A stretch of 64,000 nt of DNA from Diadema antillarum. Lineage: Eukaryota. How positions within the stretch are numbered: the stretch's first letter is position 1; every line of letters begins with the position of its first letter. Shown here one piece after another: positions 54,083-57,000 of the stretch. The stretch lies in assembly GCF_040938485.1 (NCBI RefSeq), contig NW_027271475.1:2108001-2172000 (forward strand), in the 5' to 3' direction. Below the pieces are notes generated by a model. It had not been told where the DNA came from, searched no databases, and saw only the letters and a list, made by a program, of their open reading frames with translations. Position numbers and translations under genes: made by a program.

Positions 54083-57000
54083 ATGGTGAGTTGGTCTTTT
54101 AGGCTGCCTTGACTCTTCAGAGGTTTCGCCTCAGTGAAATATTAAATTTAATTGGAAATATTCCCAAATGTATGTAGTAGCACAGACCAGCAACTGGGAT
54201 AGGACGGCACACACAAGAAACCGTCAAATGCTATTTGTGTAGTCACTCGTTCAAAAGACAAACACTTCTTCTATAGTTTGTAGTTTTCAATAAAGCTACA
54301 TCCATGGTTACTCCGATTTTACTGGAACTCGGAGCACAAGTGTTGGCCTTCAGTTTGTCTTATCATTAGATTCAATTTTTTTGTATACTCATGTAAATTA
54401 CAGCTGTTCCACATTTAACGCCCATATCAGGATGTGTCGCCACTCCTGGTGGTACAGTACACCTGCCCTGTGGCTGGGAACTAAGCATTTTACTGTCTCA
54501 AAATATAGAAGGAAAGAAATCCATGTAATATGTGCATTGGCAGACTTGAGGCTCACATGTGTACATAAATTGCTCATTGAGAACCAGTGTGTTTGTACAG
54601 TGTACCACGGTGCGAGTTGTATATCTCTTTGTGGTAGGTAACTCGTGCGTGAGTCATCGTGGGATTTCTGAAGCGTGGCGTTGCACCGGCTTTGGTGGTT
54701 GCCATTGGCAACCACTGCGTGTATTCTTATTTTGCTTTTGTGTGGTGTTTGTGTGAATGCATGAATGAATGAAGATTTGGTTATTGGGAATATGGGGATG
54801 AGTAGGGTCTAGTACCGAGGAGGCATAAGACGAGCACCTCCTTGGTAATGCATTATTGGATACGTGTAAAGCAAGTCCAAAGATTACTCTGCGATTAATG
54901 GCTTCTTAAATCCGTATTGATTACTAGTAGTACCATTCATTCTCACTGAATGCATTCCCAGAAGCGATTACTCAAAGTCAGTGGTTTAGTCACCACTGGC
55001 AACCACCATGGGTGTACATGTACATGGTAATGCTGATGAGTGTGTTTGTGTCCTTGAGTGTGTGTGTGTGTGTGTGTGTGTGTGTGCGTGCGTGTGTTCA
55101 GCATCTAGGGAGCAGTGTTCCTGTGCATGTAATATATTCTGTTGCATAAGGTTTCATTAGGGCGTTTAATTATGTGCAATTAGTCGATATTGTGTGGTAA
55201 ACTGAATGCATTAATTCTACACATTCACATAAGTATCCCACCGGGTCGGCTGTTGCCAGTAGCAACCAATGCATATTAATTTATTGTTTGTGGTGGTAAT
55301 GCGGGGGGGGGGGGGGGAGGGGGAGAACTATACTATGCAATTAAGTACGAAGTATTCTGTACGCATGACTTTAGTGAGGCGTGTTTATGACCATCGTCTG
55401 GTGATCAAATTACATGCTATTTATCCAGTATTCATACTAAATATCAAATACACTCACATAAGTGCAGCATACCACTTTGCTAATGGTCGCCAATGGCAAC
55501 CATAGTATTATGTGTGCCTTTGTGTGTGCGTATGAGTGTATAATGGGAGTGGTGGGAGGGTGAAGGGCAAATCAATGTACTGAATTATTCATACTCTTGT
55601 GAGACAGAAAGCGCGATGGTCGACGGCTCGCAACTCGTTGCGCACATGATATTACTCGGTATACATAACGATTCATGACGTACATTCAGAGCGGTGATTT
55701 GGATTATGCCTACAACTGGTTGAAATATTTGCACAATAATCAGTTCGTCAACTTAAAGAGGAAATCCACCCTAAGAAATATAATACTTTAAAAGAAAGAG
55801 AAAAAACTTCTTCACAGAATTTTGCAAAAATGACAAAAATCCGATAAGAAATATAGGAGATGTGACAATTTGAAATTTCACAATTTTTGGGATAAACATT
55901 TCTTGACCAGTCCTTATGAATCTAAGTGAACGAGTCGATGATGTCATGCCCTCACAATTTTTCATGTATGTCATATGAAATTCGGGGGGAAAGATGGTAT
56001 TTTTAGATAATACAGGTGAAAAACATAATTTCATACCAAAGTATATCACAGTTAACATTTTGTTCGTTTTATGTTTACACAGCTGCAACATGGCATTTTG
56101 GTCATGTCTGTATATAAAACGAAAATGAATCTGTGAGGGCATGAGATTATCAACTTTCTGATTTAACTATTCATAATGACTGGTCAAGAAGTGTTTTCCG
56201 GAAAAAAAAGAGTGTAAATTCAGATTGCCATATATTCCGTATTTCTTATCCGATATCAATCATTTTGCACTGTTCTAGTGAAAGGACTTTTTTCTCTTCT
56301 TATGAAATTGATAAAATTCTGGAGTAGATTTCCTCTTTCATAAGATGTCATCAGCTGTAGTTTCATGCTTTATGAAGTGATGATGTTTTCCGTGCAATTC
56401 GTGTCATCATGAAACCCTTTTGATCGTGTTAAGTCCATGGTCTTTGAGAGTCGAATCTATAAGCCCACTGATAGATTCAAGCGAGAAATGTATTCAATTC
56501 ATCTGCTCACACCAAACATACAAGATGGGACATGTTTTGAATGGAGCTGAAATGACAAGAATAACTAATCTGTTCTTAGCGATGACATTTCAGCACTGTC
56601 AACTAGTAGCCAGTTAAAATGTCCTCGCTACAAGTGCTATATGGCTACATCAGACAGACACAAATGATTATGTATGTTTGATAAGATTTCGCGTCGACGC
56701 CCCTTCTCTTCCCGATCAAAAAGTAGCAAGTTAGTTATCCTTTTTTTTTTTTATCTTGCAGCGTGAATGTATCTCTATCCACGTCGGACAAGCTGGTGTC
56801 CAGATCGGCAATGCCTGCTGGGAGTTGTACTGTCTGGAGCACGGCATCCAGCCCGATGGCCAGATGCCTTCTGACAAGACCATCGGAGGAGGTGACGACT
56901 CCTTCAACACTTTCTTCAGCGAGACTGGAGCCGGCAAGCACGTTCCCCGTGCAGTCTTCGTCGATCTCGAGCCCACCGTTGTCGGTAAGACGTTGTTGCA

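Follow-up and report, generated by a model that had tools for sequence, protein, structure and literature searches.

The window analysed here is the whole 64-kb stretch of Diadema antillarum DNA, in which tblastn locates five tandem copies of alpha-tubulin, all on the + strand. The piggyBac transposase of the window maps to contig JBFRCO010000113.1 of GCA_040938485.1, the D. antillarum assembly (PMC13511894). Copy 5 carries in its first intron the array of palindromic X-boxes that is the subject of this report. Exon 1 of this copy (53965..54085, + strand) begins with a leader block, 53965-54007, which in the alignment is common to exon 1 of the other four copies, and ends with the start codon (ATG, 54083-54085), followed by a GTGAGT donor; its 5′ edge is that of the shared leader block and not a mapped transcription start. 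The shared block supports the assignment of the exon and of its ATG, and a first exon ending with ATG has been described for sea-urchin alpha-tubulin (PMC6539552). Intron 1 (54086..56761, + strand) is 2676 nt long and contains the X-box array; farther down, at 55755-56338, it also holds an unrelated inverted-repeat element. Exon 2 (56762..56983, + strand) comprises codons 2-75 and encodes a protein segment identical to that of the other intact copies (tblastn), and exon 3 (57355..58488, + strand) runs from codon 76 to the stop codon, with a distinctive C-terminal tail. The spliced product has 452 aa. The four X-boxes sit 615-1415 nt into the intron, so that the ATG with its GTGAGT at 54083 and the start of exon 2 at 56762 place them within intron 1 of copy 5, as a preliminary description of the locus had proposed. 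The cluster lies directly downstream of copy 4, which is apparently dead.

Copy 5 had also been called the most divergent of the five genes. This holds among the intact copies, but the divergence is modest, 10-12 residues differing in exon 3, of which 6 are in the C-terminal tail. Searches of protein databases with the copy 5 exon 3, first whole and then reduced to its tail, brought up nothing but 90%-identity cluster representatives, all from unrelated animals; none of the 222 proteins returned equals any spliced Diadema alpha-tubulin product, and an exact look-up of the exon-3 ATG open reading frame found no record. The promoter of copy 5 is remodelled. It has GATTCGGCAG in place of the TATATAAGC of the other copies, and a new TATA-like TTTATAAAAT is found at about 54017, some 55 nt below the usual TATA position. 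Just upstream of the TATA position in the other copies, 176 nt before the copy 5 ATG, lies a weak promoter-proximal X-box-like site (53907..53920, + strand; GTCACCTAGGCTAA), which has a strong left half and two mismatches in the right half.

The X-box array in intron 1 of copy 5

A pattern search for the 15-mer GTYRCCANTRGCAAC gives four exact matches, all on the + strand, at positions 54698, 54989, 55252 and 55486. X-box 1 (54698..54712, GTTGCCATTGGCAAC) is a perfect palindrome that extends to 19 nt (54696-54714, TGGTTGCCATTGGCAACCA). X-box 2 (54989..55003, GTCACCACTGGCAAC) carries the permitted variants Y3=C and R4=A in its left half, X-box 3 (55252..55266, GTTGCCAGTAGCAAC) the permitted variant R10=A in its right half, and X-box 4 (55486..55500) reads GTCGCCAATGGCAAC. 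The sites are spaced 291, 263 and 234 bp apart and CA directly follows each of the four. The consensus for RFX proteins is GTNRCC-N(0-3)-RGYAAC, with the spacer given as 0-3 or 1-3 nt (PMC3414849, PMC10530576, PMC2375033). In the 64-kb window the four X-boxes are the only exact matches to this consensus with a 3-nt spacer, and the window's only other exact matches have shorter spacers, of 0 nt (45192) and of 2 nt (28681, within a piggyBac element). Most characterised RFX sites, and the SELEX models, have a spacer of 1-2 nt. The 3-nt spacer, rarely described and equivalent to the canonical 14-mer with a single base inserted at its dyad, is the widest of the classical consensus, and since spacers of 1-2 nt are commoner the affinity of the Diadema sites is uncertain.

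Exact matching thus bears out the positions of the 15-mers, the CA that trails them and their spacings as first described, together with their fit to the RFX consensus. The accompanying claim that four such sites within 800 bp are very unlikely by chance agrees with 100 dinucleotide-preserving shuffles of the 64-kb window, in which the expected number of matches to the 15-mer pattern was 0.00. At roughly 2e-6 chance matches for each position and spacer, four sites in 800 bp are likewise vanishingly unlikely, even scan-wide, and a repeat search run independently recovers the four X-boxes as one 19-nt family with the same three spacings. A chance origin of the four X-boxes is excluded.

A decayed fifth unit (54436..54450, + strand; GTCGCCACT) is found 262 bp before X-box 1. 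It retains the left half and the spacer and has lost the right half, which now reads CCTGGT. Of the six occurrences in the window of the 9-mer pattern formed by the left half plus the spacer, five are inside the array. All units have a common orientation, and the right half with its flank reads GCAACCA in the four intact units. An alternative first exon within the array was considered and set aside, as unit 2 is alone in having an ATG followed by GTAATG (55022).

Outside the motif there is little that the units share. The 50 nt upstream of the X-boxes align with a score no better than that of shuffled sequences (P=0.36), so that the motif stands as an island of conservation, and a MAFFT alignment of the four units likewise contains a single conserved island. 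The GT-rich 50 nt downstream score above shuffles, with none of 200 reaching the observed value. Both results are in keeping with the earlier remark that the flanks align through GT-richness only. Local alignments detect only short collinear blocks: units 2 and 3 share ACTGAATGCATT, and units 3 and 4 share ACAYTCACATAAGT. TRF found no tandem array with a unit-sized period in the region, only short repeats of microsatellite type, and microsatellites, including (GT)29 and poly-G, are abundant throughout the array. The ~260-bp period, the common orientation, the decayed fifth unit and the short collinear blocks are best read as the remains of an old tandem array of at least five units of ~260 bp, which would have decayed save for the motif; the suggestion that an old tandem repeat had kept its X-box alone fits these same features.

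Constraint on the motif

The strictest consensus for the RFX X-boxes of ciliary genes (Emery 1996, Laurencon 2007, Newton 2012) is matched exactly by all four sites. The 8 positions that are fixed in the Emery consensus are all invariant across the four units, and the four variable columns (3, 4, 8 and 10) all fall where the consensus is degenerate. At the centre each unit has a different base (T, C, G and A in units 1 to 4, respectively). Positions 7 and 9 of the spacer are invariant too, and therefore each site can be described as GTTGCCA and TGGCAAC, two canonical 7-nt half-sites flanking a single free base. None of the 32 sites at fixed positions has changed, whereas in the four variable columns about 44% of sites differ from the commonest base; by calculation, neutral decay at the ~44% level would leave 0/32 changes with a probability of order 1e-8 or less. 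The bases required by RFX look selectively preserved, as if held by purifying selection while the flanks decayed.

The pattern of variation also bears on what might read the motif. Going by the sequences of the four units, the outer GT...AAC never varies, and it is diagnostic of RFX. An NFI half-site and a CCAAT box were considered as the conserved feature and rejected, given that the bases they need vary among the units while GT...AAC does not. Units 2-4 carry substitutions that interrupt the palindrome (5-6 of 7 pairs), none of them compensated on the opposite arm, and the stability predicted for the hairpin falls from −15.7 kcal/mol in unit 1, with its perfect 19-nt palindrome, to between −2.2 and −9.3 kcal/mol in these three units. 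Pairing that is broken without compensation, together with weak hairpins, fits two half-sites read separately by protein and not a cruciform or hairpin. A search of Rfam gave only one scaRNA match, far below threshold (E = 0.23), and a tRNA search found none; the reading of the array as a hairpin or non-coding RNA was discarded on the grounds of the uncompensated pairs, the weak folds and the lack of a credible Rfam match.

RFX-type sites and forkhead cores in alpha-tubulin genes

RFX-type signal is found in other alpha-tubulin genes as well. The core promoter of Diadema copy 1 (6327..6444, + strand) has six RFX half-sites (RGYAAC or GTTRCY) in 118 bp that include its CCAAT and TATA boxes. No denser half-site cluster exists in the window, and its density was reached by none of 300 shuffles. 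In three hemichordate alpha-tubulin genes an X-box directly precedes the TATA box, 144-161 nt upstream of the start codon: GTTACCATAGCAAC in Saccoglossus kowalevskii, GTAACCTTGGCAAC in gene 1 of Glandiceps talaboti and, with one mismatch, GTTGTCATGGCAAC in gene 2 of the same species. The chance expectation of such X-boxes is ~0.003 per 200-bp promoter window. These promoter sites resemble the array in being RFX-type palindromes in alpha-tubulin genes of related deuterostomes, and differ from it in that they are single, promoter-proximal and built with the canonical 2-nt spacer, whereas the sites of Diadema copy 5 form an intronic array. The degenerate GTCACCTAGGCTAA of copy 5 (53907) occupies the place equivalent to that of the hemichordate promoter X-boxes.

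The copy 1 half-sites, the hemichordate promoter X-boxes and the degenerate site of copy 5 make it look as though RFX-type control is common to ambulacrarian alpha-tubulin genes in general and not peculiar to copy 5. The preliminary description had restricted full RFX sites to copy 5. That stands insofar as the array contains the sole full sites with a 3-nt spacer in the window, but it overlooks the six half-sites of the copy 1 promoter, and the idea that copy 5 alone is RFX-driven is, given those half-sites, not supported by the sequences. Nor is a specifically axonemal or sperm isotype supported for copy 5. The intronic array is what sets copy 5 apart, and it may compensate for the decayed proximal site and the lost TATA box of this copy.

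Three of the four units also contain a TGTTTGT, which matches the forkhead core RYMAAYA in reverse complement and has the same orientation (+) each time: at 54746..54752, 34 nt after X-box 1; at 55043..55049, 40 nt after X-box 2; and at 55285..55291, 19 nt after X-box 3. The heptamer is found nowhere else in the surrounding kilobase. Its placement 19-40 nt downstream has a P of 0.0002 against mononucleotide shuffles, a value to be read with the motif picked post hoc and the setting GT-rich, so that the effect may be compositional. Pairs of X-box and Fox sites are a known signature of motile-cilium genes (PMC3414849), and the TGTTTGT cores as partners of the X-boxes are suggestive only.

Proposed function and alternative readings

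The four 15-mers are very likely functional protein-binding sites of RFX type, a prediction that rests on the constraint described above. We infer RFX as the binder, activation of transcription as the effect and a link to ciliogenesis as the output. The best explanation of the array as a whole, to which we give about even chances, is an RFX-dependent intronic enhancer, perhaps assisted by forkhead proteins, active in cells with cilia or flagella. In the model that we propose: (i) RFX-family dimers would bind the four 15-mers, each as the GTTGCCA and TGGCAAC half-sites; (ii) these sites would be the survivors of a tandem array of at least five ~260-bp units in intron 1 of copy 5, in which the flanks decayed and purifying selection would have held the bases that RFX requires; (iii) a forkhead factor would probably act with the RFX sites at the nearby TGTTTGT cores, and (iv) the sites together would work as a homotypic intronic enhancer, raising transcription of the copy 5 isotype in cells that are building cilia or flagella. 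The sea urchin Strongylocentrotus purpuratus has six RFX genes (PMC2873420). In the literature on sea-urchin RFX, ATAC-seq and tubulin X-boxes, no description of this array was found.

With the X-boxes of known ciliary genes the array shares the palindromic form with two half-sites and the location in a cilium-relevant gene; the neighbouring TGTTTGT cores, as candidate forkhead sites, would recall the targets of Rfx and Fd3F. The layout is different. X-boxes usually act as single promoter-proximal sites (PMC3414849), and known RFX targets generally have one, upstream of the start codon and no more than a few hundred bp from it, whereas copy 5 has four sites (five ancestrally), ~260 bp apart and 0.6-1.4 kb inside an intron. 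A sea-urchin precedent for intronic control is Pl-Tuba1a of Paracentrotus lividus, in which intron 1 is required for expression in the ciliary band and in apical neurogenic cells (Costa et al. 2017, PMC5283682). That gene has the same three-exon structure as copy 5, a likeness of structure and not an established orthology. In Pl-Tuba1a the essential element, a forkhead site, falls within the first ~10 nt of intron 1; the more distal conserved intronic block, ICR4, is dispensable, and no RFX site has been reported for this intron (PMC5283682). The two genes thus differ in that one has a forkhead site at the 5′ end of the intron and the other an RFX array deeper within it.

Tandem units in an intron may also come from a transposon. 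HINEs, which are non-autonomous elements of Helentron type, have short central tandem arrays, with monomers of 140-180 bp, that are flanked by subterminal inverted repeats and a 3′ palindrome (PMC7492417, PMC4067079). A T-rich insertion site is a further mark of these elements. It is conceivable, and in our judgement doubtful, that the X-boxes are the decayed central repeats of such an element in the tubulin intron, with a palindrome that serves the transposon or is merely inherited and with no role in the tubulin gene. The Diadema array is like HINE/DINE-1 elements, and like Cg_HINE of the oyster, in being short, with few tandem units, microsatellites and a total length of ~1.2 kb; moreover, the four sites lie between the arms of a 14-nt inverted pair (54490 and 55597), with a small palindrome beyond it at ~55628. 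As candidate transposon ends, this pair is unconvincing: it occurs at chance level (4 matches vs 3.7 expected), its motif does not recur in 218 kb from other loci of D. antillarum, and no verified termini of a transposon were found. The decayed fifth unit also falls outside the bracket. In place of similar 140-180-bp monomers the array has spacings of 262, 291, 263 and 234 bp, the four sites differ from one another and the units, whose upstream flanks are unalignable, cannot be aligned save at the motif. The 0/32 changes at fixed positions against ~44% in the variable columns also weigh against this origin, since neutral decay would have erased the motif. A second copy of intron 1 or of the X-box array was found neither in the 64-kb window nor in the other 218 kb, which makes 282 kb of D. 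antillarum DNA in all; the 218 kb are ten other loci reached via the piggyBac transposase and consist mostly of transposon interior, so that the absence of array copies there says little.

Transposon origin and RFX function could also be combined. The array would then be an ancient domesticated copy of an X-box-bearing rolling-circle transposon of Helentron type, of which selection kept the RFX sites alone. We consider this unlikely. If it were true, a transposon would have spread ready-made RFX enhancer arrays, some of which would have been drawn into the ciliogenic regulon of sea urchins, that of a tubulin isotype gene among them.

Binding by RFX need not mean activation. Some members of the RFX family can repress transcription, and the cluster might work as a silencer or as a boundary, or keep the gene off outside certain cells, with no ciliary activation. 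The evidence for constraint on the sites serves this reading as well as that of an enhancer, and the place of the cluster, intronic, far from the start site and immediately after the apparently dead copy 4, is unusual. No sequence feature specifically indicates repression, however, and the forkhead cores, together with the X-box signal in the hemichordate and copy 1 promoters, suggest an ordinary activating cilia programme; we regard a repressive or insulating role as improbable. That the palindromes are read by a dimeric factor other than RFX, by a recombinase or by a nuclease, or work through a DNA cruciform or RNA hairpin, would suit unit 1 with its perfect 19-nt palindrome and predicted hairpin of −15.7 kcal/mol, and is nevertheless highly improbable in view of the uncompensated pairs and weak folds of units 2-4, the confinement of variation to positions tolerated by RFX, the variable bases on which NFI-like and CCAAT-like readings depend, and the lack of a credible Rfam match or of a tRNA.

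The intronic enhancer thus remains our preferred reading, and the element itself is a new instance of a well-known kind with an unusual layout. It also illustrates neatly how a tandem repeat can decay until only its essential bases are left. According to the passage of PMC12183034 that cites Gong and Brandhorst 1987, deciliation stimulates tubulin transcription in sea-urchin embryos. These embryos are the classical animal system in which the removal of cilia switches on the transcription of tubulin genes. To our knowledge, the cis-elements behind this response have never been defined. The cluster of four X-boxes is a well-defined target for mutations that probe the deciliation response, and further such targets are provided by the half-site cluster of the copy 1 promoter and by the X-boxes of the hemichordate tubulin promoters.

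RFX half-sites and the core promoter of copy 1

The core promoter of alpha-tubulin copy 1 (6327-6444) contains six RFX half-sites within 118 bp, GGCAAC, AGCAAC, GTTGCC, GTTGCT, GGTAAC and GGCAAC, placed around its CCAAT box and its TATA box. Nowhere else in the window are RFX half-sites so densely clustered, and none of 300 shuffles matched this density.

Promoter and leader of copy 5

A leader block of exon 1, resembling TCTTTTCGGCCCTACCATCRACATAGGAGAAGAAG, is conserved in all five copies, at 53965-54007 in copy 5 and near 6455, 30730, 38450 and 47370 in the other four. The promoter of copy 5 (53907-54030) is remodelled relative to those of the other copies. 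At the TATA position common to copies 1, 3 and 4, which is degenerate in copy 2, copy 5 carries GATTCGGCAG, with a half-decayed X-box, GTCACCTAGGCTAA, a short way to its 5′ side. A new TATA-like sequence, TTTATAAAAT, lies within the stretch that constitutes the leader in the other copies. Intron 1 of this gene, alongside its X-box array, also houses an element roughly 590 bp long (55755-56338) that is built as an inverted repeat; its arms, 55755-55956 and 56132-56338, are 73% complementary. One of the arms is 84% identical to positions 1475-1570 of the window, and the element is probably a MITE-like transposon.

Copy 4 and the integrity of the locus

Copy 4 (49170-50953) is 95% identical to copy 3 at the nucleotide level and differs from it by five 1-bp indels, located at 49238, 50475, 50645, 50758 and 50814. 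Either copy 4 is a young pseudogene or these indels are assembly errors; the gene is apparently dead. A canonical X-box with a single mismatch, GTTGCCAAGGCAAA, is placed at 47016-47029, 438 nt upstream of the copy 4 ATG. Three runs of N are present in the window (17634-17868, 24497-24626 and 32719-32978); the published assembly is said to be gap-free, and the runs were taken as masked sequence. The piggyBac of the window (14537-29549) encodes a transposase whose identical counterpart is encoded on other contigs too, at least 11 in all across the assembly, among them those of the D. antillarum loci L001-L010.

X-boxes in hemichordate alpha-tubulin promoters

X-boxes are also found in alpha-tubulin genes of hemichordates, one in Saccoglossus (locus L012, 3940-3953, minus strand) and two in Glandiceps (locus L013, 9857-9870 and 20597-20610, both on the plus strand), at distances that range over the three genes from 144 to 161 nt upstream of the ATG. 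Each is flanked by a CCAAT box on its 5′ side and by a TATA box directly 3′, an order of CCAAT, X-box and TATA that looks like a conserved promoter layout.
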